Of a stretch of DNA of 64,000 nt, positions 10,105 to 56,711 are shown piece after piece. The position numbers and the translations under genes were made by a program. The DNA comes from Macrostomum lignano. Its lineage: Eukaryota. The notes under the pieces were generated by a model, which worked only from the letters and a program-made list of their open reading frames with translations, was not told the DNA's origin and did not search any database. Every line of letters starts with the position of its first letter. Positions within the stretch are counted from its first letter, which is position 1. The stretch is from assembly GCA_002269645.1 (NCBI GenBank), contig NIVC01000550.1, positions 264,709-328,708 on the forward strand, read 5' to 3'.

Positions 10105-10631
10105 GGGGGGTCTTTCTTGAAAGCAACTTACGATCGGCCATAGACGTAAGTTGGGTAAGCTACACTTACGGGTTGCTCGAAGGACTCGCAAGTGTTAGCT
10201 ATGCGTAAGATTGATCGCAACTTTACGAGTTCGTAACTTTGCACAAAAGACTTTTTCTCGAAAAGTTCGTATGTCTATGGTCTTTCGTAAGGATCTTAAC
10301 CCTACGACTGCTCGGTATCAGTCGTAAGACGAACTTAAGCACTAATCGCATAGTACGTGAAGCTTTAGTCAAGCCAAGTCAAGTTAAACTTTATCGAAGG
10401 TGGGTCTTTCTCGAAAGCAACTTACGATAGACTAAGTAAAGATATTTACAGATTTATGACCATAGACATGCAACTTTTCGTTTCAGATACGACTTACGAA
10501 CAGCGTAAGCCACGCAAAGTCTGAGTGAGTTTTGAGAAAGCGTCTTACGAGCAAACTTACGCTACACGTAAATTTCTTTCTTACGATCTAACTTACCATA
10601 GATCTTACGTGAGTTTCGAGAAACACCCCCC
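10105..10631. mobile_element. Non-autonomous TIR element (MITE), 527 bp
   Basis: Ends GGGGGGTCTTTCTTGAAA / TTTCGAGAAACACCCCCC; internal re-use of the left end near 10400; many CTTACG/CGTAAG motifs; interrupts the host repeat AATTTCGGCA...TGCATTCA. No clean TSD. Confidence 0.7.
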
Positions 10632-10899
10632 TGCATTCAATTTAATTTTGTCTCAAACGTGTCTGCTCGTCTATGGGTAAACTTTATTGACGCATGCAGT
10701 TTGTGAACTCAATTTCGGCATCTGCATTCAGTTTAATTTTGTCTCAAACGTGTCTGCTCTGCACTCAATTTCGGCAATCTGCATTCAAATTCAGCAAAAT
10801 TTAATTAACTAAACGTAAAACGAAACTAATGTCGTCCAATACATGTAGTGTCAGGGAACAAAAGCAGAAAATCGAAGTCACGTCAAGTGTGGCCCTTCA

Positions 10900-11274
10900 G
10901 TCCCCATTCATGTGCATCCTGGCCAGGCTCTCGGTACAAAGCTGAAGCAGTGATTGTACCACTGGAGACACTTGTCCTGAGTGACGCTGTCGTTCACTGT
11001 TAGATCGGCGAAGCGCATCAGCGCATCTCATCGAACTTCGAGTAACACCTTCCACCCCTTGGGTCGTTATATCGACGGCCTGATCGAACTATTGAATAGG
11101 CGGTGGCTCTCTTGATGTTCATGAGCTCTGCAAGTTGTAAATAGTCCTGCCCTGTCTCGTGGGCATCGATAAGGCGGGCTCTATCTCCGTCAGAAGCTCG
11201 TGCGTATGGTCGACCTTCTTCTTCTGACTCAATTTCTTTGTCACAGCTTGTTCTTCAATGATCTCGTCACTCAT
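10900..11274 (-). pseudogene. Internally deleted IS630/Tc1-like transposase (N-terminal HTH joined to the extreme C-terminus)
   Basis: Minus-strand translation RPYARASDGDRARLIDAHETGQDYLQLAELMNIKRATAYSIVR...PRGG, then directly VTQDKCLQWYNHCFSFVPR(C)LAR; DDE core missing. Confidence 0.65.
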
Positions 11275-11649
11275 ATCTATGCTTGATATCTACACATGCA
11301 GTCAAAAAAACAGAAAGCTGGGGTGAAGTGAAATGAAAGGATCGACAAAGCCTCTTTGGAAGTAAACTGTACATGGAATTTAACATTCGTCTGTGGTTGA
11401 ATTCGAATGTATTTTGCTGAATGGCCCGACCCCGCGGGGTTAGGGCCACAGACACTGGCTGCTACTTATTCAACTTATTCTTTTACTCAAAAGAACTCAA
11501 AAACTCAATTATTTCTCAAGGATAACTTATTACTCAGGAGGACGGTAAACTCGAAAATCATGGCGAAAAAGTTGGAGGCTTGTTTAAAAGCAGTGTTCTA
11601 TGGCCCGTGCAATAATAGCATTATTTCACGGAAAACTTTTACGTAAAAT

Positions 11650-12091
11650 TACAAAGGAATAATCTCTGAAATGATGTTAAATACCCGTTTCCTAAAAAAT
11701 AGCGATAGAGGCCTGCACGAATGCACAGCAAGCTCGCTGGCGATCAGAAACCTTTTTTGGCCTTCTTTAAGTTCCATAGAAAAGGCGTAGCACATACGCC
11801 AGCGCAGAGCGTTCACACTTCGCGATGTCAAACTTGAATGGATCCATTCGCGTCGATGAAGTCATTCAGTCGTTTCACTGAGCTCCTCTCTTGATACTCG
11901 GAGCTGGCAACGCAACACTCCTTATCCAACTGTTCCAATGCGGACACTTGATCAACATCCTTGAGAGAAAGTGCTTCAGCAGCTTTCTTGAAGTCGAAAT
12001 AATCCATGTACTTCTCGATCTCGGCACCAGTAAGTCCACTTATCATTCCGCCAGGGAAAGCGTCCAAATGAAGAAGCCAGGTCGTAGTCAT
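11650..12091 (-). pseudogene. Crypton-like (DUF3504-type tyrosine recombinase) fragment
   Basis: Frameshifted translation ...SSVKRLNDF...LAYVLRLFY(M)ELK...SPASLLCIRAGLYRYF...FNIIS resembles the L..FY.E.RK.DG..Y.P.SL..IRA.I.RYL block of CryptonA/ZMYM-like proteins. No catalytic region seen. Confidence 0.5.
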
Positions 12092-12559
12092 GCAGTCAAC
12101 TGAGAAGTCCTTTCGCCTTTCCTATATAGCACTGTTTCGTAGGACATAGTCTATGGTAGTCTGGTAAAAATGAAACAGTACCAACCATTTAGTTCATACC
12201 ATAGACTGGTTCATACATACACTTTTTCTGAATATTAAATTTTAGCTGGATTATGTGGGGGCTCCGCCCCCACACCCCCGGAACGGCGCTGAACACTACC
12301 ATAGACAAAATGCAAAATAAAAAAAACTTAAGGACGGCCTTGATGCACGGACAGAAAAACAATGTAACGAAAGCACGGCTTGGTCATTTAGCCACGCGCA
12401 CTCGTGTTATAAGCGCTGCTACACTCCCAGCCGTGCTTTAGTGCCTCATTGTTCTATGACCAAGTCTTATAAAAGCTATACATTTTGTATTAAATTGCAT
12501 TGCGATTGCTTAAACATTTAAAACACAAGTAGAAATAGATTTAATAAGAGTAAAAAGAC

Positions 12560-13027
12560 AAAGCCGACAAGAAACATTTTCTTTTCCGAGTATTTGTGGA
12601 TACCGATAATACCGATGGCGAATAAAACTAATACTTTATTTTGCACGACATGTTTCGCTGAACACACAGCATCGTCAGTTAGAATAAAATATTTGTGAGA
12701 ACCAACAGGGTAAGAGAGACGCAAAATATCAATTATAAATTGAGCATGATGTACGAAAAGCTAGAATCGCACAACCTTAATTTACAAAGTCGATAAAACT
12801 AGAAAATTCTGAGATGCACACCGCTGCCTCTCCCTGCAAATTGAACAATAAGAGAGAGTTTGCAGTCTTTGATGTGCAAGGCTTCCAATATGGATAGTTT
12901 ACTATGGTGCTCAGTGCGATCGATCACTTTAAAGTTGTGAGCGGGGATTACATTAGCACAATGGTTGCACATAAGCAGGTGGTCTTGTATCGCGCTGGCC
13001 TTGGTACGGACATAGCTAAATTTTAAA
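12560..13027 (-). mobile_element. Penelope-like element 3' fragment (GIY-YIG C-terminus plus 3' tail)
   Basis: ORF 12799-13035: SAIQDHLLMC...NFKVIDR...KLSILEALHIKDCKLSLIVQ, followed by a hammerhead core; cut at 13027 by a MITE. Confidence 0.8.
12647..12678 (-). ncRNA. Minimal type-I hammerhead ribozyme core
   Basis: CUGACGA-U-GCUG-UGUGUU-CAGC-GAA-ACAUGU-C: intact core boxes, 4-bp stem II, palindromic stem III, GUC cleavage triplet; stem I only partly paired. Confidence 0.75.
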
Positions 13028-13895
13028 GTCAGCACTTAGGGTTTACCATAGACAACAGTAAAGAAATGAAATCGATTTAGTCAAGTGCCACGTATTTAAA
13101 CCACGGAGGAAAGAACAGAATGGAGCGCTAATCTGAGCAAGTTATTTTTGTCTCGCTAGATCTTCACTTTTAACATCCCTTTCCCCCCGTTCATTCCTAT
13201 TGGCTCGTGACTGCCATAGACAAAGTATTTTTCGTCTCGTTTTCGTTTTCGTTCCCCTCTGAAAGGTATGTCCCAGCATAGTACGAGCTCGCATCAAAAT
13301 ATGCTTTCAGCCAATAGGAAAGAACGGGGGGGGGAAAGGGATGTTAAAAGCGAAAATCGAGCGAGACAAAAATAACTGGCTCAGATTAGCACTCCATTCC
13401 ACTCCCTCCTCCATGATTTAAACCCTTCCATGACTTGATTTTAGTCAAAGTGAATTTCATTTAGTCATCATGGCGGCAGCTGCAGGCATTCGCAGAGTCA
13501 CTATCTCTGACAGGACCGGCGAAGACTCATAGACGCCTTTATTGGCAATGCCGATTGGCAGCAACTAGCGAGACAGCTAAACATCCCACGTCAGTCTGCC
13601 AGAACACCAGAACTCTACAAGAACACCGCGCCCGCATTCTTGAGCGTGAACCAGAGGCCAGTGCAGCTGTCACACAGCCTCACTGCGAAGCCTGGCATCG
13701 TGAGAGCTTACGGCACATACCCTGCTGCATTGCCATGGAAGAGATTGAATTGAAAAGTGAAGCGTCGTAACAATAATTTGTTGTGTCTGTGTTCCCTTGT
13801 GTTGTTCTTGTTTAACTACTCGTATCTTAGCAAAGCTAACGACTAAATAGATTTCATTTCTTTACTACAGTCTATGGTAAACCCCGAGTGCAGAC
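13028..13895. mobile_element. Non-autonomous DNA transposon, 868 bp, ~55-bp TIRs, 4-bp TAAA direct flanks
   Basis: GTCAGCACTTAGGGTTTACCATAGACAACAGTAAAGAAATGAAATCGATTTAGTC versus the reverse complement of the right end; TAAA at 13024-13027 and 13896-13899; second ~90-bp inverted pair at about 13120-13205 / 13310-13400. Confidence 0.8.
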
Positions 13896-14044
13896 TAAAT
13901 CAAACTCACTTTTCTAGGACTGAGCTGGTCAAAGACTAAAAAACTTCACTTATGTCCAAAAAAATTGTTAAAAGGTATGCTCTTCTCTTTTCTTTAATTG
14001 CTAATGCTTGAGAGCTGCAGACGCCATAGTCTATGGTCATAACA

Positions 14045-14160
14045 CCGGGGTTGCGCTGTGGGGAAATCTCGGCGGGAAAACTTCCAGCGGGAAAACATCG
14101 CTGCGGGAAAATCTCGCGCGGGCAAACGTCGGCGGGAGAACTTCCTGCGAAAAAAACTCT
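14045..14160. repeat. Degenerate ~15-bp tandem array (GCGGGAAAA core), subterminal-type repeat of a TIR element family
   Basis: About 7 units; related arrays at 17230-17265 (reverse) and 18070-18140. Confidence 0.6.
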
Positions 14161-14351
14161 CATAGACCCATATACTGAGGTGGTGGGGCGCTTTGCGATC
14201 GATATATTGAATTGCTGGCCCTGGAGCTTCGCGATCGGTATCAATGGTTTTGGGCTGAAGGATCAATAATGTGGTTGATGGAGCATTAATGCTATTTAAG
14301 AAAAATGCAGTCCAAAACATAGCCAGTTCATCGCGCCAAAGACCGCAGCCG

Positions 14352-16057
14352 CTAGCTGTAGTATCTCACTCTAGGCTTGAAAGTCTCAGTGACATTAAAC
14401 AGCGGCTTCCGCCTCTTCCTCATGTGATCATAGCCCAGGTGCAGGAAGCGGTGCACAGCCACAGTGCTGTTGTCAGAGTCATCCATGCTCCAGTTCTTCC
14501 ACTTCAGCATGCGACAGCCGCGATCCAACCAGAGATGCTTCTTTCTCCCGAGCGGCTCTGCAAACAGGAGCGCAGGCTTCGTTTCATTTGTTATGCCCAG
14601 GCAATTCCAGCTATCCGCTCTCTGCAGACTGAATACCAAGTCGGAGACTCACTGGCTCCGTGGCAGACACTCGTCCAGTTGGTCTGCCAGTCCATCAGCG
14701 GGGAGGCCACGCTGGGTGGCAGCAGCCTCACCGGCCAGCTGCGGGCAGGCCGGCTATCTTTGTACTTCTTGTACACCTTCGTGAGAACCATCGGGCCAGT
14801 GGAGACGATAGATGTACCGGGCAGCCTCTTGGCGAGCACTTTGTGCATCATGGATCTGAAGAAGGGATGCCCCGGCACCGAGCCCATCAGGGAGTTCATG
14901 GCGCTGAAATTGGCGTCATGAATGATTCTGGTCAGCTCCAGCCGCTCCTGGTCGATGAAGGCCGCTTGCCGGGTGAGACTCGGCCCGAACGGCTTCACGC
15001 ATTCGACGTCCATGTCCAGGTAGATGCCTGCGGTTGAGGTAATGTGGGAAGCCACAGTTTATAGGAAAATGTGAGCGGATTCTGATGGAGACCTGGGAAG
15101 GATTCTGATGGAGATCTGGAAGGATTCTGATGGGGATCTGGTAGGAATCTGATGGGATCTGGGAGGATTCTGATGGGGATCTGGGATGATTCTGATGGGG
15201 ATCTGGGAGGATTCTGATGGGGATCTGGGGGGATTCTGATGGGGATCTGAGAGAATTCTGATGGGGATCTGGTGGATTCTGATGGAGATTTGGGAGGATT
15301 CTGATGGGGATCTGAGAGGATTCGTATGGGGATCTGGTGGATTCTGATACGGATCGGAGAGGATTCTGATGGGGATCTGGTGGATTCTGATACGGATCGG
15401 AGAGGATTCTGATGGAGATCTGGGAGGATTCTGATGGGGATCTGGGATGATTCTGATGGGGATCTGGGAGGATTCTGATGGGGATCTGGGAGGATTCTGA
15501 TGGGGATCTGAGAGAATTCTGATGGGGATCTGGTGGATTCTGATGGAGATTTGGGAGGATTCTGATGGGGATCTGAGAGGATTCGTATGGGGATATGGTG
15601 GATTCTGATGGGGATCTGAGAGGACTCTGATGGGTATCTGAGAGGATTCTGGTGGGGATTTGAGAGGATTCTGATGGGGATCTGGAGAATTCTGATGAAA
15701 ACCTGAGAAGATTCTGGTGGAGATCTCGGATGCAGCATATTTTGTAGCTCCATTAAAAGGTTAAAGTGCCGCACCTCCAAACCGGTGCAGGATGACGTAT
15801 CGAATGGCATCGGAGTGCTGCAGGTTGTATTTAAAGCTCAGGTAAGTCTTCAAGTATTGAGGATATTTCTTGGAGATGAGAGCCCTGGCATCGGAGTCCC
15901 GCCACAGGTAGTAAGTCCAGTTGGGGTTAAGCTTCAGACAGCTGCTGATCATTGGCCGGTAGTTCTCGTAGACCATCTCGGAGGCGAAGGTTTGATGCAG
16001 AATTTGAGGGATCTCGAATGCAGCTGGGGGATTTTCTTGCCTCTGGTTGGCAGCCTC
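14352..16057 (-). CDS. GT32 / DXD-motif glycosyltransferase (OCH1/SUR1-like); exons 16057-15775, 15027-14653, 14557-14352; 5' exon(s) unresolved
   Basis: [31 protein letters not shown]|[35 protein letters not shown]; phase-compatible GT-AG introns 15774-15028 and 14652-14558. Confidence 0.88.
15077..15727. repeat. 22-bp minisatellite (~30 units) filling a glycosyltransferase intron
   Basis: Unit GGATTCTGATGGGGATCTGGGA with variants; period 22 measured at 15189/15211/15233. Confidence 0.95.
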
Positions 16058-17276
16058 CTGTTGAACTTTATCAAATAATATTATATAGTTATCTGTTAGG
16101 TGGCTGTCTTCAGCTGTTGCATGAGCCTCCCACGAGTTGATGTACTTGTAGCATAGCAGTGCCTGAAATTACATTGTAGTTTGAGTGAAACAGTGGCACA
16201 GTCTCTTCACAGGTGACCAGCACAAATAGGCCTTGGAGTTTCGGCACTTATGGTTTTGGCCTGTGGGTTGAGCGCAGACTCTTCCCTGTCTGTCATCTCC
16301 CGCCCCAATACTCCTGGCCGCCTTAGCGTCTCTATACCTAAGAGACCATCTGCGACCATCTGTGCAGTGTCTCGCTCCTGGCTTAATGCTATTCCCCTTT
16401 AATTCCCTTATTATTTCCCTGTGGCGCTGTTCCATTCCCCTGAATTTCGTCCATACCATACAGTAGTCCAATCTTCACTGTTCCATTGTTACTGTTGGTA
16501 CGTAAGTACTTTAAGTACTTTACGTAAGTTTTTGCCCCAATTTAATTTCCTCACCCAAATGCGCGCGCAAGAGCCTGGTAGGTTAGCACACCCTACTCGC
16601 GTGATGACCCTTGCATCCGACCCTCCATTCCTCATTCTGATGCACCCAACCCATTTGCAAGCGATTGCTCATTGTTGCGCAATCATTATCAGTCAATTTC
16701 TCTGTCTTGTTCCCGATAATTGAGCCTATTGTTCTTGTTTCACTCTTCTTTCTCTGAACCCCGTCTGCCAGACCCCCGGGGAGCTGACCTGAATGCGACC
16801 ACACCCTCCAGATTCTCATTTTCCACACGTGACCCACTCCTGGATGCAGAACCCTAGCTTCTCGCACTGAGCATTTTAGGAAACTACGAGCGTATTGAGC
16901 TTTATACGTTCCCTCATATTACTCTTAGTAGTAGTCCAGCACGCTGTTATCTTCGTCAGACACAACTACAAAAGATCCCTGCTGAAACATCCTTTAGTTG
17001 GTGTAGCAGACTTCCGATGAACGCTAGATCAAAGTCCTATCTTCGGCAAATGGGGAGCAGCTCATATCGGGTAGTGACAGCCTTTGTGGTGGCCCCTACA
17101 GCGGCCCGAAAACCTGCAAAGGCACCTTCAGGCCCAAACGCTGCCTTAAAACTCCTTTACTCCGGTGGGTGATCGGAGACGAGCACGACAAGAGGCCTGT
17201 GGTGGCGCCAAATTCTATCGACTATAAGAATTTCCCGTAGCGAGGTTTTCCCGCAGCGAGGTTTTTATCTAATCTA

Positions 17277-17962
17277 CGATGGCTGTCCATAAAGTAGTGT
17301 TACTTTTCACTATATCTCTTGTTCTGCTGATTCAAATAACATATTTTTGCACAGATTTATAGCGGCAACTCTCTTCTTTATGTTAACTTTACATCATTAA
17401 AAACAGACAATGGAAACAAAATTTATAAACTAAAATGTAGCAGGACCTCAACCATAGACTTACAGTAAGTAAGCAAGTTAACAAAAATTCGAAGTGGTAG
17501 CTGACAAATGGGTATCTGGCCGCAGTGAATGCTGCAAAATGACTGCGATAGACCCATGAGCCCATGAAAGTTGAGCATGAATCTCGGCTCAACTGTCCCC
17601 TGTCCCCCAAAGGGTATATCCAAAGAGTATTGAGGTCGCCTCAATACTCTTTGGGTATATCAATGCTACTCCAATTTTTTCATAGATATCTCTTTGTCAC
17701 AGCAGCCTAACAGTCTCAGTGCATTCTATCAAAAGTTTTGATAAAAACTTTCCGCTAGCTTGTCGAATTACTGTAAAGTCAATTGTCGAGGTCCTGCTAC
17801 ATTTTAGTTTATAACTTTTGTTTCCATTGTCTGTTTTTAATGATGTTAAAGTTAGCAAAAAGAAGAGAGTTGCTGCTATAAACCTGTGCAAAATGGTGTT
17901 ATTTGGATCAGCAGAACAACAGATTATGGTGAAAAGTAACACTACTTTTTGGACAGCCCTTG
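17277..17962. mobile_element. Tc1/mariner-type MITE, 686 bp, ~200-bp TIRs, TA TSD
   Basis: TA|CGATGGCTGTCCATAAAGTAGT...ACTACTTTTTGGACAGCCCTTG|TA; central hairpin CCAAAGAGTATTGAGG-TCG-CCTCAATACTCTTTGG near 17620-17655. Confidence 0.88.
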
Positions 17963-19132
17963 TAGTTAATGTCTAGTCTAGCCTAGTTCTAATCTAGCAT
18001 AGTTTTTAATCTAGCCTAGTTCTAATCTAGTCCAGGATTGTCTATAGACTGGACTTGAAATTCCGACTGGAAAAGACCCTGCGGGAAACTTCAACGAGAA
18101 AAACTCTCGCGGGGAAATCTCTGCGGGAAACTTCGGCAAGGGGAGGCGTAGATGGTTGGCCATACCGGTGTGATCTAGAGAGACAATCAACTCTTAATGG
18201 CGAAAAGGCGTACACTTAGTCAAGTTCATGCAGATGAATTATATCGTACATGTAAAATCCAAAAATGAAACTCACCAAACTGACACAGACCAGTAGAAGA
18301 AAATTCCACCTCTTTTTCATAATATCAGACGCGGTGCTGCAGTTTGCGTTCACTTATACCCTAAATGAGGGGTTCAATAGTCGGTTTTTTCTTGCTTAAA
18401 TGTCCAGGCCACAAGTGCGCGCAGCATTTGTAATACAAAGCAGCATTGTACGCTCGTAATCAAGATATTTGTAGCCAAATTTCTTGTGCATGAAATGTAG
18501 GATTAAAACCACTTAAATAAAGCTCACTTTCAGGGAGGTTATTGACATAGATTTTATTTTGCGGGATTTAATCAATCACTTTCTTGGACATACTACAAGG
18601 ATTGTTGTATGTATCTAAATAAGCAAGCTTCTCTCTTCTCTCCCTTTGTGACTTGAGAAATTTCTTAATGAAATTTAGTCTATGGTAAGAATTGTCTATG
18701 GTAAGAACCCCCAGCAGGGGCTTCGCCCCCACACCCCCATCCCCAACTTCAACCATAGACATACAAGTATGGCTCCGGGATTTATCTGAATGCATCCCGC
18801 AAAATTAAAGTTGTTTAAATAAGATATTCTATGGGTTTTTCAGTTGGTATTTCACTTAAATCGCTCAAGCCTTCGGCTCTCGGGATTTAATCACATACTG
18901 ACCTCAAACCCATAGAATATCTTATACATATGCACACTGCCTGCGTTAAATACAAGCCGATTTATCTGTTGAAATACATAATGATTACCACAGTTTGGCC
19001 ATAGACTACGTTGTTAAATACACACTTCGTCGTGTTATAATTACTCTAGCTGCCTTAGTGGTCTAGCCAATACTAGATCATGAGCCGTTTAAGCACGCTT
19101 AATGCGCATGCACATGTACAGCCCATTTGCGC

Positions 19133-19501
19133 GGACTAGTCAGGCATTCCACTACAGGAAAAATACGCGACTAGACCATGGGTCCACGGTGCATGGACTC
19201 GACTAGTGGATTCAAGAAATCTAATATATAGAGAATAGAGAATATTAAAGATTATTAGATATTAAATATCTATATATTTTATAATTTATATTATAATTAA
19301 AAGATTATAATATTAAATAATATAGAGAATTTTAAACTTATTAATAGTGTCGAAATTAAAATGAAACGAAAATTGCTCAGATTTCTCGAGTCCACGGGAG
19401 CCATGACTAATGGATAATTGCCATGACTAGTCGAGTCCATGCCACCGTGGAACCATGGTCTAGTCGCGTATTTTCCCTGTAGTGGAATGCCTGACTAGTC
19501 C
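19133..19501. mobile_element. MITE with ~75-bp TIRs and AT-rich core
   Basis: GGACTAGTCAGGCATTCCACTACAGG...CCTGTAGTGGAATGCCTGACTAGTCC. Confidence 0.8.
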
Positions 19502-19642
19502 TCCGCTGTTAGGTGACATGTAGGTCCTTGTGTAAAACTGCTTCTAACTGCCAACTAGGCTCAGGGTATGTTCAACCAGTTCGGTAATTGACAAGAATGC
19601 CCTCAACCAAGGGTAAACTGCCCATTCCACCAACAGAGCTGG

Positions 19643-20724
19643 GGCCCGTGCTATAGAATACTCTTAACTCCTAAATCCTTAAGAGTGTCCCAACTCCTAG
19701 CTCCTAGCTGGCTTTTCTGTGCTATAGAATCAGAGTAAATTTTAAGAGCTAGGAGGCTCCTTAAGGACGTTAGGAGACTCCTGGGTGAATTTAGGAGAAC
19801 TCATTAAGGTCCGTGGCATGCTATAGAATTAGGAGAGGAAGTCTAGGAGCTAGGAGCTAGGAGCTGGCTTTTAGGAGTCATTCTAGGAGCGTGTGTCCTA
19901 TAGAATGAGAAAATTTTGCTCCTAACTCTTGACTCCTAAGCAAGAGTTCAAAGGGCCAATTTTCACTCTTAGACAAGCTGGGATTATAATGTTTTCGGAC
20001 AGTGAATCGGATTCTGATGAGGAAGGAGTCAATGATAGACGCCGTCGACAATTTAAGACAAGAATTAATTTTTTGAAGATGATTCAGCCGAGAGTGCTAT
20101 GCGTTTTAGACTTAACGAGATCCAGCTTTCAAGCCTAACAGATAGAATTCGACACAGAATCGAACATCTTTGTACCAAACTTTTCACGGCATTCCAATAT
20201 CACGTCTTGCCACATAGCAATCTTCGCATTCTTAGTTATGGTTGTACTAAACGCACCAAAGAGAACCTCTTTGCGTGCAGCGACGGCTCTCACAAAAGAT
20301 ATTTTTTAGCAATTTGCATTTTCACTCCTGAGATTCAATCCTTAAGGACCATAAAGTTAGGATTGTGATATAGCACACAATTCTCTATCATCCTTAAACG
20401 ATTGCGCAACACTCCTTGAACACACCCCCACTCCTAGGCTGCACTCCTTGCAAGAACTCCTAGCTCCTAACTCTTAACTCCTGAAATCTATAGCACACAA
20501 AATTCAATCACTCCTTGTCAAGAGTACTCTTGAGTCCTAGCTCCTAACTCTTAACTCCTGAAATCTATAGCACACAAAATTCAATCACTCCTTGTCAAGA
20601 GTACTCTTGAGTCCTAGCTCCTAACTCCTGAAATCTATAGCACACAAAATTCAATCACTCCTTGTCAAGAGTACTCTTGAGTCCTAGCTCCTAACTCCTA
20701 ACTCATGATTCTATAGCATGGGCC
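19643..20724 (+). mobile_element. Internally deleted PIF/Harbinger element with ~75-bp subterminal tandem repeats
   Basis: TIR GGCCC(G/A)TGCTATAGAAT; transposase N-terminal remnant RRRRQFKTRINF...MRFRLNEIQLSSL (19929-20200); three copies of CTATAGCACACAAAATTCAATCACTCCTTGTCAAGAGTACTC at 20488-20690. TSD not evident. Confidence 0.7.
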
Positions 20725-21961
20725 ATAGGCACAAAAGCTTGCAGGTACGTACGCAGTCATACGCACATACACTCACACAGGAGTGTACAGCGGCCCTAAT
20801 TTTTTTCTCATTAGGGATGTACCAGGCAAGCCTCTATGTTCACTGCGTTCGCTGCATGCAGAGAGTGCAGCGAGCCAATACGATTCGTTGTATGATGTAC
20901 ACTTCACCGTGTCTTAAAGGGGATGGCCCTCAAGGGCATTAACTGCACCAGCAGACCCAAGCCAAGTTACTAATTTAGCCGCAAATATGTTACCACAAAA
21001 TTTAAATTGAGCCTGGGCCGCTGGCATATCAGAGCAACACGCTAGACAACTACTTGTATTGCCCCTCTGCTCCACTGTGTTTTACCCTGACCAAAGGCTG
21101 TTGCACTCAGGGGCAATATACCAATATTGATAGGCTGCAGAGAGGAGAAATGAGCTATAACGCCAAGGTACATAGCTACTGTCTGGTAAAATTCTATTTA
21201 CTCCAATGCATTTAGCCAGTTTTATGGCCTGCTAAAATATCTATGGCAAAGCCAGAAGACAGTCGGGTCAAGGGGGCACTTGGCCCCTTTTGGGGGTGTG
21301 GGGGCAGAGCCCACACATTTGCACATCTCTAGAGAATCTAGAATCTAGAGAAATCTAGAGAAAGAAATAAAAAATCTAAGAAATTGTCTATGGCCAGAAA
21401 TCCTTATGTAGAAGATAATACATGGCTTTTAGGGTTGTATTTGTTTAAATCCCAAGAGTCAAAGGCTCCTGGGATTTAAGATAATACAACCCATAAAAGG
21501 CATGCATTATCTCACTTAAATTCCTTCCTTTTCTGGGATTTGACCTAATAAATCCCAGAACATGTGACATTTGTCTATGGCACTGCATTGTGGGGTCAAG
21601 GGGGTCAACAGAGCCCCATGTATCCAATCTCTTTATTTGAAAGTTGTGAAAATAATATTTGTCGTCTATGGCTACAACCTAGATGCTAGTCTGTGTTTCC
21701 ACTTTTTCTAATGCTTTTAATTTTGCTTATCTTTCTAAGAGCTTCTGCCTGAAATTATTTGGAAAGGACCTATAAATCACATAAAATGAGAAATTACATC
21801 TTTAAATTTTCGTCTATGGTAAAAAAGAAGTTTGCAAATTTGACTGAAAGGGATTTAACATTAACTAAATACTTATATGCATGAGTTTTATATTTATTGC
21901 AGTTAGCCATAGACAATTGCAGCAGACAGGCTGCCATGCATTTTATCCCATTTCAACACAC

Positions 21962-22206
21962 TTATACACCTTTTCAATTTTGATCCAAGTCCAGTTCTAA
22001 AAAACCACCGGAAATTCAATTCAGACAATTCAGACTGGGACAATGCCTACAGAAAATCAATAGAAACAAACCCCAGTTCAAAACATTCTGCGACCAAAGC
22101 AAGGGTTAGCCATAGACAAAATCATCCCTAGTCTGAATTGTCTGAATTGAACCTCCAGTAGTTGTTTAGAACTGGACTTTAATAAAAATTGAACATGAAA
22201 AGGTAT
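21962..22206. mobile_element. Degenerate MITE; related copy near 50800-50980
   Basis: Inverted arms with CAATTCAGACAATTCAGACT / AGTCTGAATTGTCTGAATTG and TATAC...GTATA ends. Confidence 0.55.
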
Positions 22207-23047: not shown

Positions 23048-23177
23048 TTCAGTAATAGCCACTTCAATAACAAACCATTACCAATTTGGTAATAGCCATT
23101 TCAGTAATAGCCACTTCAATAACAAACCATTACCAATTTGGTAATAGCCATTTCAGTAATAGCCACTTCAATAACAA
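23048..23177. repeat. 52-bp tandem repeat (~2.4 copies)
   Basis: AATAGCCACTTCAATAAC at 23054, 23106 and 23158. Confidence 0.9.
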
Positions 23178-44100: not shown

Positions 44101-44329
44101 TTTTAGTGACTCTTCCCCAAGAATCATGTGCAGCATTACAATGGATGCTTATTAAGTTCCTAGAAAATGTAGCCTAAAAATGCACCAATTAAATGAAACT
44201 TTACCAGCAGTTAGGGTTGGATGTTCTGTTTGCTTGTAAAATTTCAGCTTAATTGGTTGCAATGATTTGTTGCAGTGGCCAAAGGTTGGCTAAAAAAGTG
44301 CCAATCTTGCCATAGCTGACTGACTGCGA

Positions 44330-45050
44330 CAGGCGAGTGGCAATCCTGTTACAGTTTTGGCTAGGTAGCTATGCGGCCACCTGCTTTCAGGTGCTGCATG
44401 AGGCTCTTTAGGAACAAGTGCCATCCTAGTTGATAGTATATGAGTGGTTTGCGCACTTCTACTGTGGCTTGGCCACTCTAGACAACGATCCTCGCAAGGG
44501 GCAGCCAAGTTTGGCAGTGTCTGACAGAGTCATTGCTACTATTCAATGCCATGTGGAAAAAGATTGGCAAGTTTCAATTTGCTGGTTAGAGTAGCTCATT
44601 GGGATGTGGGATTCCACCATCATTAAGATCCTGCACCAGTACCTTGGCATAAGGAAGCTATCCACTCACTAGGTATCCCACCAGCTCAGAGCTGACCAGA
44701 TGCGAGCCAGAGTTGAGTTTGCCAAACTCATGGTGGCCAGGTTTAACAGAGGCCACTCAAAGTTGGTGGATAACATCCTCACTGGCAATGAAATCTGGGT
44801 TTACTTGTATGACCCAGAGACCAAAGAGCAGAGTTGGCAGTGGGTCACCAATGAGGAAGATGCTCCTCTCAAATTTGGTCACAAGTGCAGCATCGGAAAA
44901 GTGATAGTGGCCATTTTCTTCCAACGCAGTGGCATCCTGCTACCAGTGCTGCTACAGCAAGCCACAAGGTGCCACAGTGATGGCAGAATGATATAGCACT
45001 GTCCGCTTGCCTTAGGTTCTGCAGGCACTTTCATAGCAGCAGCCAAAAAT
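44330..45050 (+). pseudogene. mariner (DD34D-type) transposase relic
   Basis: ILHQYLGIRKLSTH*VSHQL and ILTGNEIWVYLYDPETKEQSWQW...GKVIVAIFF; stops and frameshifts. Confidence 0.85.
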
Positions 45051-47921: not shown

Positions 47922-50900
47922 ATGGCACCTAAGGCTAAGGCCGATAATACGACAGGTAAGCTATCATTTCTTTTGAGTACACAGCCATAGACTAAACATT
48001 CTTCCTTCTATTTCTAGACCATCCTAGACTAGATAAAATAACTAAATGTGAGTTGTATGACTCGAGGTGTTCGAGCCAGGCCAGGGCTAGGCCTACTTAT
48101 GGTCTGTCCTAATGTGGTTGGCATTATTATAATTCTACATGCTTTAGCAACATAATTTATTAAGTTTATTGGCTAGTTTTCACTTGTTTAAATTTTTTAA
48201 TTATTTATAATATTTAGCACATATAATGAATTTTAGTCTTAATACAGTCAACTAGGCAGTTCCTGGACACTTCATCATCTTCACTTATAAATTAGCTGTT
48301 TCTTACATGTATTTGCTTCTTATATGTGATTTCATGCACCATATTTACCACACTCAGGAAGGTGTCACATGTGTGCGGGAATATATTTCAGTGTATTTTT
48401 GGAGTGTGCGCTGTGCGTGAAGCTAAAATATGCATTTGTGCGCAGAGGTCTACATTCGTTTATTGACAAATACATAGCTAGAGTACTAATGAGCCGTAGG
48501 CCCTAGCACAAAAAACCGAATAAAATATAATTAAAACAAAATTAAAAAAATGGATAAATTTTCGTACTTTATGTAGGCTTTATTTCAACTCAGAACTTTT
48601 GTTTTATTTTAGCTCACGCAGAAAATTATCAAAAAATAGCTTTAGCTTTACGGTAAAATACCATTTTGAATTTTATTATTCGTTTCACTTACTAAGAAAC
48701 ACTTTTTCATTGATAACTTGGAAAAAACTTAATCTTTAAGCATATTTTATGCACTGCATATGCAGATTATACATTTACGTGACTCATTGTGGACTAAATT
48801 TTTCTGATCGGGTTTTGCTATGCGCTAATGTGCGCTAAAAACTTCTGCTAAGCCTTTGTTGTGCGCCCTGTGTGCCACTTCGCGCACATTTTTCGTTGAT
48901 GTGCGTAGGAATTTTCCGCCATAATGTACACCTTCTTGAGTGTGGCATATTTATAATAAAATTCTAGGTGGGGGTAGGCTGGCCACTTCAGTCTTGAGGG
49001 GTAAAGTGACCATCTCTGTACCTGCACCCCTCTTGGATCCACCACTAGGCCTATCCTCCACCACTATCCGCCACTGTGGGACAAAACATTATTGATGACA
49101 AATTTGTAGTTTAGTCTAGCAAATGCTGCCTGATAGTTACCAATGGTGATATGCAGGAATTCTCCAAACCTTTCTGGAAATGAACAACTCTGATTGGGCT
49201 AATAGCTAAGCAAATGGTAATGTGTAATCTTTTCTGCAAACCAATTTATCTATAGACGGGTTATTCCATGATAAGTAAAGGTCAGATGGGATCCCAATCC
49301 CGATCCCGAAATCTCAGGATCCCAAGGAAAATTGGATTCCTGCAGGACTAGAATCCTGACCCTAAAAAACACAAGAAAGGGGAACAGGTCTTTTGATTAA
49401 AAATTTATAGAATTAGTGATTACTTGAATGTATTTTGTTTTACCTTGTACTCATTACATTATTAATTTGTTGGTTACAAAACTTTGCATCAATTTTGTTG
49501 TATTCTACTTTTTGATCTTGATATTTTTAGCTCAATTTTGTTTAACTTTATATGGACCTATAAGCTACAATACACTAAAAGACCTGATCCCAAATCCCGA
49601 TCCCGGTCATGCTTGGGCACAACCTAGGGATTCACCCGGCCATTTCTATTGGCAACACACACATGTAAGTCGCTATTGGACAGAATAGTAGTCACGTGAC
49701 TGCTCTTAGCCAATAGCGACTTACATGTGTGTGTTGCCAATAGAAACAGCCGAGTGATTCCCAAGGTTGCGCATGTATGATCCCAATCCTGAGAAAAAAA
49801 TTTTTCTTGATCCCAATCCTGCTCAAAGATTTCAATCCCGTCCAACCTCTAATGATAAGGTCATCAAAGGCATAGAATTTTTTTTTTAATTATTTGCAAA
49901 TGTCTACAGACTCTGTACCATGCTCGACCTTGCAATTGTTGTAGCCAAGTGTCAAAACCTAATTTGTCTATAAAGATCTTATGAGTCACAACAACTTCTA
50001 CTAAACAAAGCCAGTCATAGAACTCCACACACATTATAGAACTACTTGTGGTTGATTTTGTCTAGCTGGAAGATCCCTGGCTAACTTGGTAGTGAATAAA
50101 GCTCTATTTAACTTCTTGCTAATAGTTTTATTTGTTACTTGTGGTTTGATTGGAAAGTTTTGACAAAGGTTGGCATTTAACTATAAGTACTTTACTATAA
50201 TTAGGGGATTCACTTCCACTTCAGCTTTGATGAATGTTTGCATTTCTTGATCCCACTTTTTTGTTTTGTACCTACTCTTGGTTGCTTCTCTAGCCTTCCA
50301 GATTATATAATTATATACACTGTGGTTCTTTTTATGCCTAACTAGCATGCCAAGTCTGCAAAGTCTTCTCTTTCAAATTCTCCAATAATTCTAGCTCTAT
50401 CGGCATTGCTAATCCTATTGTTTGTCTAGTGCTGCTGACCATAAGGCTCACCAACTTGATGTTTGGCCATCACAACACTCTGCCATCCTCCTCTAGCAGG
50501 TCAACTGAGTTTTCTTTGTTAGTTGCCATATCTATTTTGAAAGGGAATTGTTTCTTTTGAACTTCTTGATATTCAATCTAGTGAAATATATATACATGAT
50601 TCAACCATAGACAGTTGTGTCAGTTTTTATTGAAATGTTTGTGTCTCTTTTGAACTACATTTTGTCTTTATTGATTTTCTTTTTGGTCTCTCCCCCATAA
50701 GGTTTTGTAGCAACCAAAATCCTATGTTTGAATTTCTATGTCTGTGTTCTTTTAATTGATTTCTGGTTCTGTTGATCCCCTTGATTCCGCCACAGAAGCA
50801 AGCTTTAACCATAGATAAAATGCCAATGTTTGAATTGAAATGGCTGTCTGTTTTGAACTGGGGTTTGTTTTTATTGATTTTCCATAAGTGTTGCCCCAGT

Positions 50901-53900
50901 CTGAATTGTCTAAATTGACTTTCTGCTAGTTTTTTTAGAATTGGACTTTGATCAAAATTGAACATAAAAAGGTATAGTTTCTGTAACAAAGGTAAAACAT
51001 ATCAATGAAAAAGGCCACACTCTGGATCATGTATAAGGGATGTGCAAAAAAGTTTTGGCAATTGGGTTCCCAATTGCAAATAAATTGTTAATAAATATTT
51101 AAACTCTATTAAAGTCTTCCTCTCTAAATGTAATCTCTGCCACATTCTATGCATTTCTAATGACAATAGATTCATGCCTCAAAGGCAGCACAGTACTCTG
51201 AAGCTAGCATGGTGTTTAGCTCTGAATTCATGCAGCAAGCCAGGTCCTTAGGCCACTGAAAATGGCATCTAGCCATGTATTTGGTCAGCTTTAGGAAGGC
51301 CTAGAAGTCGCAATGTGCCAAGTCAAGATGGTATAAAGGGTGCAGTATCACTTTAAGCTTGTTATCAGCCAAAAGCTTATCATGGCTGCAGTGTGGCTAG
51401 AGGTGTTGTTGTGGTGCTAGTGAATTCTGCCACTTTAGAGGTAGGTTAGCTGCTTTTCCATGATTGAAGCCACAATTTAAAGAAAAACCTTACTAGTATA
51501 AATGTGGCATTGATGTTCTGTCCATTTGGCACTATAAAAACTATTCCTGGCCCATTGATGCTGAAAATGATAACAAATATCTATGTCTATGAGTGAAACC
51601 CAGGTTGTAGAACAGTTGAACAGTCTTTATTGGAACCAATCCAAACCTTGTTTTGTTTCTTATTGGGCACTTAAAAGTAGTAAAACCACTTCTTGTCACT
51701 ATTCACAACATCAATAAGTTGCTATTGCCACCTTTGCTGAAGCATTGCAGAAATTCTTGGTTGCATCAAACCATCTCCTGCTTCTGCTCTGCAGTGTGTA
51801 GGTGTGGCATCCAATGGGCTATGACCTTGCAAAGGCCAAGATGTTCATGCAAGATAGTTTAGACACTGCCACCAGAAATGCCTATTGTTTGGCTAAGTAG
51901 TGCAACAGTGATATTGCAATCTTTGTCCACCAGCTATCGCATAGCTACAATGTTCTGCTTGGTTGTGGATGTTATTGGCCTCTCAGAAAGCATTGACTAG
52001 CACTGACCAATTCAATCCAACAGGTGACGGTGCGGTATGAAGGGGCCTGATCTGCTACAACTTGGACTAGCTTAGCATGAATTTTGGTGGCATTTTCTCC
52101 AAGCTACAATTGTATTAAAACAAAATCTGTACTGATATATATATATATATATATATATAAGGAAAGCAGATGTTTGTCATCTTTTTCAGCATTAATGGGC
52201 TAAAGATAGTTGTTATAGTGCCAAATGGATAGGACATATATATATATATAGCAACAAAGAGTAGCATAGACAAAAAGAGATCTAGCTAGTCTTTGCATAG
52301 ACACGTTTGCAGAATAACTGAGAGGGACAAGTCATGGCAGACTGATCAGCAGTGATATTTTCCATTTGAAGGCTGAAAACAAGACTATACATTAAGCAAA
52401 ATGCTTTAAGAAACAAAAAAATCCATGCAATAAGCTGAAACTTTATGAACAAACGTAAAATATACTCATATTTATGAGATTAAAAAATGGTTGCATTTAA
52501 ATATTAATTTAAAAAGTTATGAGCCAGTTGCCAAAACATTTTGCATACCCCTCATAGTATATATCCAAAATTTTGGGGATGTGTGTATTCTTACTCAATT
52601 TTTATATATATTTGTAACTATTCAATTTTTGTTTAGGCATGCACCTAGCATGATCTGGACTATATGAAAAGGTAGCAGTTAAGAGGTGATGGGAGTGTGA
52701 ATAAAAAAACCAATATATTAATTGAATATGATTGAACTTTGTGTGATTGCAAGTTGTAAAGAAGTAATAGACAGCACTTATTTTATAATTGTGGAAGTGT
52801 AGCTCGTCTAACAAATAGTAGGAAAATAAACGTCAACAAAAACATAAAAAGTAAACTTTGTTTAATTCTAGCCAACACGTTTTGTCAAACATAAGACTTC
52901 ATCAGGGCAAATTCAATCAACCTAAGATCACACCACCAATATATTTAAGCAAAAATCACTGTACAGTCCAGAGGCGGGTCAAAACAGTCTGGTAGAATTT
53001 AGAAAGTGCCAAGTACACAACAAAGTGAGAGAGAGAAAAAAATAATAAATAGGCACGGCTCTGCTCACAGTACTCTTAGCTCACGCTCTACCCCATTGCC
53101 AGCAAGCTGCACATTCAGGTTGGGTTTGTGCATTCTGATATACAAAGCTTTGATAATCTTAAGCTTATGGTCAAATTTGCACCCATCCAACACTCTAAAG
53201 AGCTGAATCGGTTCACCGTCACAGCATTTTTTACAAACAAGCAGACTTTTTGCAAACTTTTTGCATTGCAAGAAAGAATTCAGCAAAGTTTCTTGCGATG
53301 CGAGACCCAGGCAACTGGAGATAGATTCTTGGGACGCTCTGTTGGTTCTCCCATTTTTTGGCAACGCTTCGCTTGACTTCAGGAAAAAAAAAGGAGAAAA
53401 CGTTTAGCAAATGGCTTAAGTGCATCGTTAGGATTGTGTTTCGCACCAAAAAGATCGGTCGCTATGCTAGCAGGCTCAAGTCAGCTGTTCCACTTGCTCT
53501 AAGGGCTGGTGTTGTTTACCAATTTAGCTGCTCTGAGGATCAGAGTGTTTCCTACATTGGAAAAACGAAGCGACACCTGCATACTAGAGCTAGGGAACAT
53601 TGGCTAAAAAGCTCTGCAATTAATGACCATCTGCTTGTTTGTAAAAAATGCTGTGACGGTGAACCGATTCAGCTCTTTAGAGTGCTGGATGGGTGCAAAT
53701 TTGACCATAAGCTTAAGATTATCGAAGCTTCGTATATCAGAATGCACAAACCCAACCTGAATGTGCAGCTTGCTGGCAATGGGGTAGAGCGTGAGCTAAG
53801 AGTACTGTGAGCAGAGCCGTGCCTATTTATTATTTTTTTCTCTCTCTCACTTTGTTGTGTACTTGGCACTTTCTAAATTCTACCAGACTGTTTTGACCCG

Positions 53901-56711
53901 CCTCTGGACTATACAGTGATTTTTGCTTAAATATATTGGTGGTGTGATCTTAGGTTGATTGAATTTGCCCTGATGACATCTTGTGTTTGACGAAAGGCGT
54001 TGGCTAGAATTAAACAAAGTTTACTTTTTATGTTTTTGTTGACATTTATTTTCCTATTATTTTATAATATACATGTAAATGTCAAATGTAATAATAAAAA
54101 AGGTCCTGATTGTCAGAATATAAAAAAGTCTTTTATTAATATTGTTATAACACAAAAGTAAGATTGTATGACTTTTAAATTTTAGCATGACATGACAAAG
54201 TTGTATTTCCATTTTTTGCATACTTGGTGTACACCAAAATTTTGCCCAAAAAACTCTGGCATACACCAGACACCTTGACTATGACTAGTCACTTAGGTCA
54301 TGTCTCATTAATTTATTAACTATTTTAGTCTTAAAATAGTTCATCCTAAGACCATTTTTGCCATAAAATTCAAGCAATTAAAAAGTCTTTACACAAGTTT
54401 TAGTAATTTTGTAATTGGAATTTTTTATATTATGAGGTTTTGTAAAATACCTTTTGTTGACCATAAATGTCAATTAGATAAGCCAGATAGGCTAATAGTT
54501 ATATTATATATAGTCCTATATAGATCCAATCCAGCAATCCTACTCCTATAGCTAAGCTAGCATGGCTCATAGCTAGAATTGCTAAAATCTTATAGCTTAA
54601 ATGAAGGTGTTAAGATGTCTAGATTCATATACAATTGTTAATATGACAAGTATTGTATAAAGGGATTTCTGGGATGTCAAAGCTTTTAAGAAGGCTGTTT
54701 AAATGATATTGCTTAAAAAGGTTGAGCCAAAGCTTATAGGGGATTATACAGAATGTATATAAAAGACCACTAATATGTTTGGCTAGATAGGCCTAGCTGG
54801 CATTTAGGACAGATACTTTTTGTTTTAAACTTTTTTATTATATAGAGTATGTTTTATTATTATATTTTAGAAATGCTTCTTTATAAGAAATGTTTTACTT
54901 AAAAAAATTGATAAAATGTCAATCTATTGACATTGTTTTAGTAACAATAAAAAACATTTTGAAATAGATTTAAATAGCTTAGTAACATATATGTTATATT
55001 TAAATGTTTTTTATTTGTGTATCTGTACCATATATTAATACTATTGAATAATAATAATTGATTACACTTTCCTAATGGGCAGATATGCAACTGACAACTC
55101 AGCCACAGCTATTATGGGTAGGCTGCCTAGGTTGAAATGCAATTGAAACGCTCTACATTTGTCCGCCGTCACTGTCTATGGTCAATGCAAATCTGCTCAA
55201 GACTGATTTAAGCATGAGTAAAATTGGATAACTTTTCGTCTCAGTATATTTCACTGCGAGAGCAAACACAACATGAATGAAACACGAAATAAACGAAAGA
55301 ATTCAGTAAATAACATGGTTAACGTGGTTGGATAGTTCATCAATAGTTACCTGAAATACATGGTCGTAGTTAGAAACTGCAATCCACAACACATCTGTCT
55401 AGCGTGGTGTAATGTTGAATGTGCTTGGATTGGACAATTCTGCGTCAATCAACTGCTGCTGTCTTATGCTCAGACCAGTCCACTGACTAACTTCTTCACC
55501 AGGATCACGATGTCCAAGTTGCTGCAGAAATGCAATCTCATTCATTTCTAAACTGCTAATATCTTCCTCTAGTATTGATTCCCAGTGAAAAATGGCTAGT
55601 TCCGAACCTTTAAAGCTGTTTAAATCTTATTTTTCTCTCGACCCACCCACCAGGAGAAGAATGCTTCAAACTCTATTTGGGTTTCAACCATAGACAGTCT
55701 CCGCGGACTTCGAAACCGCCACTAAGCATATAGCTAAAGCTTTTTCAACCATAGACAGTTTCTGTGGACGTGAAACCGCGTTGTGCGTCCGCGCTTCAGC
55801 CTACCCATAACACTAATATGGACTGGCTGTTCGGACTCGGCCTCGGCGTTTCAGTTAATTTCAGTCCTCAACAGCCAGTCTATATTAATATATTGCAGGG
55901 CACATCTGAAGGCTGCATATGGCTATTTAGTCCAAGGACTAGGGAAGGGGGTTGCCACACACTGAATTACCCCAGCTAAATGCTGGTTCCCATTTTATAG
56001 CTAGTTGAACTGAAGCAATGTAGAGTTAAGTGTCTTGCTTTAGGACACAAATTGTTCCAAGTTGGTTGAGAATCGAACTTCCAACTTCACAACATCAGTT
56101 GTGGATCTGACACTCTAACAAACCCTGTATCCATAACAAATGGCATATAAATGAATATTTACCTGCATAGCATGGTATAATATACTCGTATGCTGCACAT
56201 TCTTTAGGGTATTGTCTACCAATCTGGCCACTTTGGAGTACTATAAATCAAGTTTTCTTAAATTCAGTTATAAACCTTTTCTATACCCGCAGTGACAAAG
56301 GCGCTCAAGGCCAAGGGCCAGCAGTTAAAAGGGGCGCAGCAGCTGCGTAAGCGGAAGATCCGGGCCTCGCCGCGGTTTAAGCGGCCAGACACCTACCGCC
56401 CGCCCCGCACCCCCAAGTACGCGCGCCGCTCACTGCCCCGTCGCAACTCGCTTGACGCATTTAAGATAATGCAATACCCGCTGACCACCGAGTCTTCAAT
56501 GAAGAAGATCGAAGAGCAGAACACCCTTGTGTTCATCGTTGACAAGCGGTCCAGCAAACCACTGATCAAGGACGCGGTGAAGAGGCTATATGACATTCAG
56601 GCCAGCAAGGTGAACACCTTGATCCGGCCGGACGGTCTGAAGAAGGCCTATGTAAAGTTGAGCGCAGAGCACGACGCGCTTGACGTGGCCAATAAGATTG
56701 GCATCATCTGA
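47922..56711 (+). CDS. RPL23A: 60S ribosomal protein L23a (uL23), 150 aa; exons 47922-47955 and 56293-56711
   Basis: [12 protein letters not shown]|GTAAG donor joins in phase 1 to CCGCAG|TG, giving [14 protein letters not shown]...[23 protein letters not shown]...[18 protein letters not shown]...DVANKIGII; AATAAA at 56768. Confidence 0.93.
48348..48945. mobile_element. Non-autonomous TIR element, 598 bp, exact 8-bp TSD
   Basis: CCACACTCAGGAAGGTG...CACCTTCTTGAGTGTGG; TSD CATATTTA on both sides. Confidence 0.88.
49608..49779. mobile_element. 172-bp hairpin MITE, CAT...ATG ends, central CACGTG
   Basis: ~60-bp near-perfect arms; AGTCACGTGACT in the centre (CACGTG at 49693-49698); flanks ATCCCGGT / ATCCCAAT. 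Confidence 0.8.
51620..52110 (-). pseudogene. mariner transposase relic
   Basis: [38 protein letters not shown] and [11 protein letters not shown], with stops. Confidence 0.8.
52874..52905 (-). ncRNA. Degenerate hammerhead ribozyme core (minus-strand pLTR copy)
   Basis: CUGAUGA-A-GUC-UUAUGUUU-GAC-AAAAC-GU-GUU; the conserved G of GAAA is changed to A. Confidence 0.6.
53970..54001 (+). ncRNA. Degenerate hammerhead ribozyme core (plus-strand pLTR copy)
   Basis: CUGAUGA-C-AUC-UUGUGUUU-GAC-GAAAG-GC-GUU; stem I GCC/GGC; stem II and stem III each carry a mismatch. Confidence 0.65.
55750..56135 (-). mobile_element. tRNA-derived SINE (decayed)
   Basis: Minus-strand head with B-box GTTCGATTC, then TGTGTCCTAAAGCAAGACACTTAAC, typical of tRNA-SINE bodies; 3' limit uncertain. 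Confidence 0.6.

Follow-up and report, generated by a model that had tools for sequence, protein, structure and literature searches.

Two kinds of DNA transposon are the closest described counterparts of the system treated here. In Tc1-like transposons with inverted repeat/direct repeat (IR/DR) ends, such as Sleeping Beauty and Tc3, a short conserved core that contacts protein lies within variable inverted repeats, two sites to an arm. The subterminal repeats of hAT, CACTA and PIF transposons consist of many 6-12-bp words in both orientations, irregularly spaced within a few hundred bases of the ends and common to non-autonomous derivatives; AAACGG in Ac/Ds and the 12-bp motif of En/Spm are examples. 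Satellites derived from miniature inverted-repeat transposable elements (MITEs) have one core in dispersed elements and in tandem arrays, and host octamers, such as the Ruby motif CTGTTTCA upstream of nematode 21U-RNAs and the bacterial uptake and Chi sequences, are sharp 8-mers that are regional, occur on both strands and have unrelated flanks. The subject of this report is the octamer CCATAGAC in a stretch of 64,000 nucleotides of Macrostomum lignano (assembly Mlig_3_7, GCA_002269645.1, contig NIVC01000550.1, positions 264,709 to 328,708; hereafter the window), which resembles each of these systems in part.

The comparisons reported below suggest that CCATAGAC is a cis-element of transposons, probably a transposase-binding core, common to diverged DNA-transposon lineages, and we put the chances of this account being right at about even. 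On this account a cis-acting site for protein binding, of which CCATAGAC is the conserved core, would lie in terminal or subterminal inverted repeats across several M. lignano DNA-transposon lineages, and non-autonomous derivatives of MITE-like and hairpin form would carry it too. Selection within a transposon lineage would preserve the 8-11 contacted bases while the remainder of the repeat drifts; since only the contacted bases are kept, the lineages would have the core alone in common and their flanks would look unrelated. Copies would decay neutrally after insertion, and the local excess would reflect the nesting of many such elements in one 12-kb transposon graveyard and one long intron. 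Elsewhere the core would also have been amplified into tandem arrays with 7-bp and 39-bp units. The likeliest binder would be the helix-turn-helix (HTH) DNA-binding domain of a Tc1/mariner-type transposase. CCATAGAC does not seem to represent a novel type of signal of the host genome.

Abundance and distribution of the octamer

Exact matching recovers 29 copies of CCATAGAC, 16 on the forward strand and 13 on the reverse, at every start listed in a preliminary description of the window that was made from its letters alone. The excess is about 10- to 20-fold. Dinucleotide shuffles gave a mean of 1.2 copies and a maximum of 5, and Markov models trained on the window itself, with tandem arrays masked, predicted 1.2-1.6 copies at orders 1-3, 3.2 at order 4 and 7.1 at order 5; the earlier claim that the copies are far above chance therefore survives a higher-order background. 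In the order-4 ranking of all 8-mers of the window CCATAGAC is first, and each of its 24 one-mismatch variants occurs only 0-7 times. The base directly 5' is a purine in 27 of the 29 copies (A in 17, G in 10), as had been reported; T is favoured at positions -5 to -3, and C is absent from both bases directly 3' of the octamer (+8 and +9) in all 29. A word co-occurring at a fixed distance was sought in the window and none was found, the only enriched partner of the octamer being the octamer itself, reversed and upstream, in three divergent pairs 50-95 nt apart. A scan of the window returned zero tRNAs and no Rfam family reaching its gathering score, and a microRNA scan of the 10-22 kb island gave sub-threshold noise only. 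Searches of one paper library found CCATAGA in none of its Macrostomum papers and TCTATGG in a single, unrelated Fasciola paper, and a search with the raw word of the motif returned primer noise only. The M. lignano genome paper makes no mention of a motif of this kind (PMC5730564).

Clustering of the copies is regional. Twenty-two lie within 12 kb of transposon debris (10056-22200), at a density of 1.8 per kb; five are in the 8.3-kb intron of RpL23A (0.6 per kb) and two in an intron of a bHLH-PAS gene. The intervals 22.2-35 kb and 56.3-64 kb of the window hold none, so the uniform spread through non-coding DNA that the preliminary description implied does not hold. No copy falls inside the mapped exons, the long interspersed nuclear element (LINE) or the long terminal repeat (LTR) retrotransposon of the window.

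Eleven other M. lignano loci were available for comparison, namely paralogs of the RpL23A locus and six sites carrying the same LTR element, the six having been reached through one reverse-transcriptase open reading frame (ORF) of the window matched as an exact protein. The eight non-redundant loci that were counted, 170 kb after removal of two tandem arrays, contain 6 copies against 3.9 expected, a count that gives no sign of a genome-wide excess outside arrays. Three of these six are a single site within a variant of the LTR element (e.g. L007:15123), and one is a chance match in coding sequence (P-I-D in a Usp gene, L002:12930). The supposed restriction to non-coding DNA outside LINEs and LTR elements is thus true of every window copy and has exceptions at other loci.

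The arrays set aside in that count are of two kinds. The motif lies in a degenerate 7-bp array, (CCATAGA)n alias (GGTCTAT)n, in loci L002-L004 (2300-2960 in L002), and in an L012 minisatellite made up of 28 units of 39 bp. As in MITE-derived satellites, one core occurs in dispersed elements and in tandem arrays; unlike in those satellites, the arrays and the window elements share only 11-13 bases. GGCCATAGACAAT is common to the 39-bp unit and the window copy at 21386; no window copy matches that unit over more than 13 bases. Some features of the array loci may be recorded here. The 7-bp array of L002, like those of L003 and L004, is split by a MITE of about 400 bp with G/C-rich terminal repeats (GACCTCGGGGCAGGCGCGTCGC...); this MITE contains a 22-bp tandem repeat and a core, GGGGGGACATGTCCCCCC, like that of G/C-rich palindromes in the window. 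Three minisatellites, with units of 39, 30 and 35 bp and 20-28 copies each, lie in L012 at 16968-18056, 18960-19661 and 21427-22110, within 5 kb downstream of a copy of the LTR element, and only the 39-bp unit has CCATAGAC.

Elements that carry the octamer

Conservation of the octamer above its flanks is seen in element X, which is about 2.9 kb long. Its left arm (18695-19020, +) holds copies 18753 (+) and 18999 (+), and its right arm (21375-21640, -) holds copies 21573 (-) and 21386 (-), which mirror 18753 and 18999, respectively. The arms align at a constant offset and are only 58-61% identical, and the longest identical runs between them, TGGCCATAGAC (11 nt) and CCATAGACA (9 nt), are both motif-bearing. 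The chance that both 8-mers would remain intact at this level of identity is about 2-4e-4. Besides CCATAGAC, the sole well-conserved block between the arms is GGGATTTA/TAAATCCC, which occurs seven times in 3.3 kb (18563-21857) and forms small hairpins. An ORF inside element X (20069-20365) was considered by eye as the N-terminus of a PIF/Harbinger transposase and rejected, having no Pfam match and no homolog among 1.84 billion proteins.

Other copies reside in inverted repeats of different make. The element at 13027-13896 (+) has 56-nt arms (13027-13082 and 13841-13896) that are 88% complementary, and GGGTTTACCATAGAC is located in both, about 20 nt inward of the outer edge (13046, +, and 13870, -); the motif and the seven bases preceding it are identical in the two arms, and the four bases following it differ. 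Inside the element are a hairpin insert (13095-13422), the loop of which holds copy 13214 (+), and an ORF with similarity to HTH domains. A MITE flanked by TA on both sides (17274-17965) has inverted repeats of about 200 nt, the left arm bearing an exact motif at its inner end (17452) and a degenerate one, CCATAAAG, 165 nt outward (17287), and the right arm bearing CAATTGAC at the place matching 17452. An element of 694 bp (55114-55807) has 14-nt terminal repeats, TTATGGGTAGGCTG, and three copies, 55174 (-), 55688 (+) and 55749 (+), at distances of about 50-120 nt from the ends. An identical 16-mer, TTCAACCATAGACAGT, is present at 50600, 55683 and 55744, that is, upstream of a further HTH ORF and within the 694-bp element. 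A hairpin (foldback) MITE (21973-22193) carries copy 22110 (+) between its arms and belongs to a family with three copies at unrelated sites. In its relatives the same place is occupied by CCATAGAT (at about 50812 of the window) and CCATTAGAC (at about 5700 of locus L005). That the motif sits in several element families and not in one short interspersed element, as proposed earlier, is borne out by the differences among these inverted-repeat elements.

Comparison of flanks nevertheless qualifies the earlier statement that the copies have unrelated surroundings. It is largely accurate within the window, but hidden families emerge: 13046 with 13870; 55174, 55688 and 55749 with 50605; 18753 with 21573; 18999 with 21386; and 22110 with its two decayed relatives. 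Three copies, 21664 (-), 21812 (-) and 21907 (+), spanning 21664-21914, were assigned to no family.

The remaining copies of the debris are grouped more loosely. Cluster A (10138-10676) comprises 10138 (+), 10273 (-), 10460 (+) and 10669 (-), with the variant CCATAGAT at about 10596, and directly follows the 3' LTR of a Gypsy-like element that ends at about 10055. The 500-bp stretch that holds cluster A looks like the subterminal-repeat region of a DNA transposon. A second word, CTTACG/CGTAAG, is found 13 times in both orientations over about 480 bp of it (10127-10609), interleaved with CCATAGAC, and 19 times in the whole window. Cluster B (12149-12306) comprises 12149 (-), 12199 (+) and 12299 (+). 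The two near-palindromes pointed out in the preliminary description are real, one beginning at 12144 and including copy 12149, the other a 13-nt sequence, CCATAGTCTATGG, at 14024-14036 formed by copy 14029-14036 (-); so is the tandem duplication, a 16-bp repeat at 18678-18701 (-) that contains copies 18678 and 18694. Palindromes of a G/C-rich type, GGGGCTTCGCCCCCACACCCCC, stand beside motif copies at 12253-12286, where one adjoins cluster B, and at 18702-18745, 21285-21318 and 21590-21618.

Outside the debris, the bHLH-PAS copies are 35192 (+) and 35921 (-), spanning 35192-35928. Intron 1 of RpL23A has one copy 28 nt into the intron (47985-47992, +), another, 50605 (+), in the HTH ORF region at 50270-50612, where it lies inside the 16-mer TTCAACCATAGACAGT 150 nt upstream of the ORF, and the three of the 694-bp element.

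This intron can be compared with that of a homeolog, locus L005, which is 85-97% identical to the window from 47.2 to 64 kb and has 0 copies of CCATAGAC across 20 kb. It lacks a 778-bp block (55114-55891) that consists of the 694-bp element and an 84-bp MITE and holds three copies in the window, and a 2.2-kb segment (50364-52547) that holds copy 50605. In being present in one homeolog and absent from the other, both components of the 778-bp block behave as expected of MITEs, which are short non-coding elements with terminal inverted repeats. Copy 47985, the sole alignable homeologous site, corresponds to TCATAGAC in L005, a substitution. The occurrence of CCATAGAT, CCATTAGAC, CAATTGAC and TCATAGAC at homologous places indicates that family copies decay neutrally after insertion, and to judge from these alignments the window copies act as parts of mobile or deletable segments, unlike conserved host sites. 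The lack of excess in the other loci, the absence from L005 and the decay among paralogs therefore give no sign of selection at host loci. The preliminary description had offered a genome-wide protein-binding site under selection as one explanation; the genome-wide and host parts of that proposal fare poorly against the 6 copies for 3.9 expected and the 0 in L005, and a protein-binding site would still be indicated, though one of mobile elements. An element of 1.36 kb with terminal repeats CCTACTGGGATGCAACTC... occupies 7905-9258 of L005 and is absent from the window at about 54775, another insertion by which the two loci differ.

Candidate binding protein and alternative explanations

A decayed ORF in the debris (copy 1, 11021-11254, -) matches the Pfam family HTH_SB with an E-value of 2.4e-4, which is sub-threshold (21 bits against a curated cut-off of 43). 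The ORF inside the 13027-13896 element (copy 2, 13511-13750, +) is 52% identical to it over 29 amino acids, the two sharing DR.RLIDA...D..QLA..LNI.R..A. Searches with tblastn gave further copies ridden with stop codons, one in the window (copy 3, 50270-50452, -) and two in L005, for a total of five in about 250 kb; the HTH ORF is therefore a dispersed transposon gene. A copy stitched across frameshifts matches HTH_Tnp_Tc3_2 with an E-value of 0.0055, below cut-off. Of the five HTH copies, three have copies of the motif 150-900 nt away. Between clusters A and B and cluster C the similarity in DNA is limited to the motif with its nearest bases (identical over 14 at most), and the HTH ORFs are 52% identical in protein. 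Retention of the peptide with DNA similarity confined to the motif is the pattern expected when diverged relatives keep a site and the domain that binds it; that a protein binds CCATAGAC, and that this protein would be the transposase, is our inference. A separate fragment of a mariner DDE domain is present at 44673-44993 (Pfam E-value 0.0023); no DDE domain was found by Pfam in frame-by-frame translations downstream of the HTH copies.

Likeness to Tc1-like IR/DR ends extends beyond the short core in variable inverted repeats, at which binding is here predicted. Paired sites within an arm occur in two elements, with a spacing of 165 nt in the 17274 MITE and of 187-246 nt in element X; that MITE has TA flanks, and the nearby gene fragments weakly match HTH_SB and HTH_Tnp_Tc3_2. 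A TA reading of the 13027-13896 element requires arms that differ by 2 nt, and the 694-bp element has TA at the left and 8 extra bases at the right. GGTTTACCATAGAC is similar to the repeat core of Sleeping Beauty, GTTTACATACAC, and to the site of Tc3, a similarity that is no more than a lead. Assignment of the putative transposase to Tc1/mariner in particular is nonetheless tentative and, in our judgement, rather doubtful. Unlike in Tc1-like transposons, an intact transposase and canonical CAGT termini were not found here.

Several observations weigh against the proposed transposase-binding core. Neither an intact autonomous element nor an intact transposase was found, and every match to a transposase HTH domain in Pfam falls short of the curated cut-off; a search of PDB sequences with HTH copy 1 gave no significant match (Sleeping Beauty, E-value 1.2). 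One of the HTH copies in L005 (17783-17938) has no motif in the roughly 3 kb that adjoin it to one side. Some 12 of the 29 copies were placed in no element. Inverted-repeat arms detectable by BLAST hold 3 copies against 2.5 for random placement, and the association with arms is weak, 11 copies lying within 60 nt of one against 5.5 (P = 0.014). The motif does not have a fixed position or orientation in the terminal inverted repeats; it lies about 20 nt from the end and points inward in the 13027 element, lies 50-120 nt from the end and points outward in the 694-bp element, and lies 178 nt from the end in the 17274 MITE. Such variation, which is unlike Tc1-like ends, and the presence of 4-6 copies in some clusters fit the subterminal repeats of hAT, CACTA and PIF transposons better than classic Tc1/mariner ends. 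Cluster A, with CTTACG as its second word, is a further likeness to these repeats; unlike in these transposons, their transposases were undetected and their target-site duplications unseen in the window. Finally, little of the remaining genome was sampled, with a bias toward genes that have copies of one LTR element.

The sharp definition of the motif, with one-mismatch variants at background, would also suit a site for a host protein, such as a heterochromatin, insulator or small-RNA-cluster factor, that is used in certain repeat islands and satellites and that transposons merely carry or have acquired. The presence of the motif in unrelated repeat types (MITEs, the 7-bp array and the 39-bp minisatellite), the retention of both copies in the diverged arms of element X, the strong confinement to one 12-kb island and the lack of a fixed position or orientation, which is unusual for a transposase site, are all compatible with such a protein. 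We consider it improbable, however: the only alignable homeologous position is not conserved, copies decay in other family members, and no excess is seen in 170 kb of introns and intergenic sequence elsewhere. Known host octamers share the sharpness, regional occurrence, occurrence on both strands and unrelated flanks of CCATAGAC, which differs from them in having no fixed downstream partner, no homeolog conservation and no excess beyond the island and the arrays. The (CCATAGA)n arrays of L002-L004 and the 39-bp array of L012 raise another reading, also of low probability, in which the copies are functionless relics of one old repeat, or of CCATAGA micro- or minisatellites, scattered by rearrangement, the 8-mer surviving by chance or ascertainment. 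It is helped by the sharing of GGCCATAGACAAT between the 39-bp unit and copy 21386 and by the 15% of simple and tandem repeats reported for the M. lignano genome (PMC5730564). In the arrays, however, C comes directly after the 8-mer, which is true of no window copy, and all 29 lack an adjacent second unit. Decay of an old repeat predicts many one-mismatch variants and related flanks, neither of which is observed, and the arms of element X, only about 60% identical, have kept both motif pairs unchanged.

The preliminary description had also suggested that the octamer is a scar, written at unrelated sites by transposon excision, repair or reverse transcription. Short templated scars of other words have clearly been made in the M. 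lignano genome, as the homeolog comparison shows, indels often abut motif copies, and the paralog pair 10138 and 10429, a single and ambiguous case, suggests a 7-nt insertion (CGAT|AGAC to CGATCGGCCATAGAC). Yet no duplicated TA or other target duplication flanks the motif, within families the copies form part of longer homologous stretches, and clustering in mirrored repeat arms is unlike random scars. Of the five copies comparable between homeologs, four lie in present/absent segments of 0.7-2.2 kb and the fifth differs by substitution; CCATAGAC was not seen in this comparison as a small insertion with a duplicated target opposite an empty site. We regard a scar as very unlikely. Hardly credible is an artefact, whether an error of assembly or polishing or a by-product of base composition: the assembly was built from long reads, but the excess holds under Markov models through order 5, independent contigs contain the word, as do three paralogous contigs that differ slightly around it, and it is placed in structured inverted repeats.

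There is also a slight chance that a host protein, or a domesticated one derived from a transposase, recognises CCATAGAC and marks repeat islands and satellites as heterochromatin or small-RNA-source loci. Such a protein might promote breakage there as well, which would explain both the seeding of the 7-bp and 39-bp arrays and the indels that often abut the motif.

If CCATAGAC is indeed a transposase-binding core, it would offer a handle on the DNA transposons and MITEs of a regenerating flatworm model. The M. lignano genome is over half repetitive, and transposon-based transgenesis has so far been unsuccessful in this species (PMC5730564). The binding core and the HTH gene family would point to an endogenous cut-and-paste system that was recently active, because insertions differ between homeologs. 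As a simple marker, the motif would also help to annotate those MITEs and satellites of Macrostomum assemblies that otherwise defy classification.

Other short words and neighbouring genes

Scar-like octamers other than CCATAGAC are present in the window. TAGGCCTA and TACATGTA are its second and third most over-represented 8-mers, and their flanks are unrelated. Together with TAGGCCCTA they are strongly over-represented (22 counts over both strands against 2-3 expected), with 11 sites each for TAGGCCTA and TACATGTA across 10.8-62.4 kb. Small indels between the window and L005 are TA-flanked insertions with striking frequency and include TA to TAGGCCTA, TA to TAGGCCCCTA, TA to TAGCTA (twice) and TAC to TACGAGCTAC. 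TA-flanked insertion sites are found at 54788 of the window (TAGGCCTA) and in L005 opposite positions 54282, 61102, 61474 and 62001. TAGGCCTA and its relatives look like excision footprints of TA-targeting cut-and-paste transposons, which would have been left at many sites.

The window begins with the Gypsy-like LTR retrotransposon (1 to about 10055). A second endonuclease ORF fragment at 12802-13035 is, by eye reading only, a remnant of a Penelope-like retroelement. The first, a GIY-YIG domain fragment at 53325-53807 (Pfam E-value 2e-6), is likewise Penelope-like by eye. Exons of a glycosyltransferase (14594-16168, -) enclose an intron with a tandem array of 30 copies of a 22-bp unit (15077-15730). 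An RNase PH exon is located at 28778-29335 (-). The bHLH-PAS gene (33383-36452, -) has its bHLH exon at 36129-36452 and its PAS exons at 33383-34834; a tandem array of 35 copies of a 23-bp unit (32629-33407) lies directly 3' of its last coding exon, the final 25 bases of which it overlaps. A LINE occupies 38.7-41.3 kb.

RpL23A consists of a first exon at 47922-47957, the 8.3-kb intron and a last exon at 56292-56711, the product of which is 94% identical to an M. lignano protein. The short first exon reads ATGGCACCTAAGGCTAAGGCCGATAATACGACAG|gtaag; the public annotation of the contig has the last exon only, as a 'partial' protein of 138 amino acids. Short, degenerate interstitial telomere-like repeats (CTAACCCTAAAC) are found at 44002-44059.

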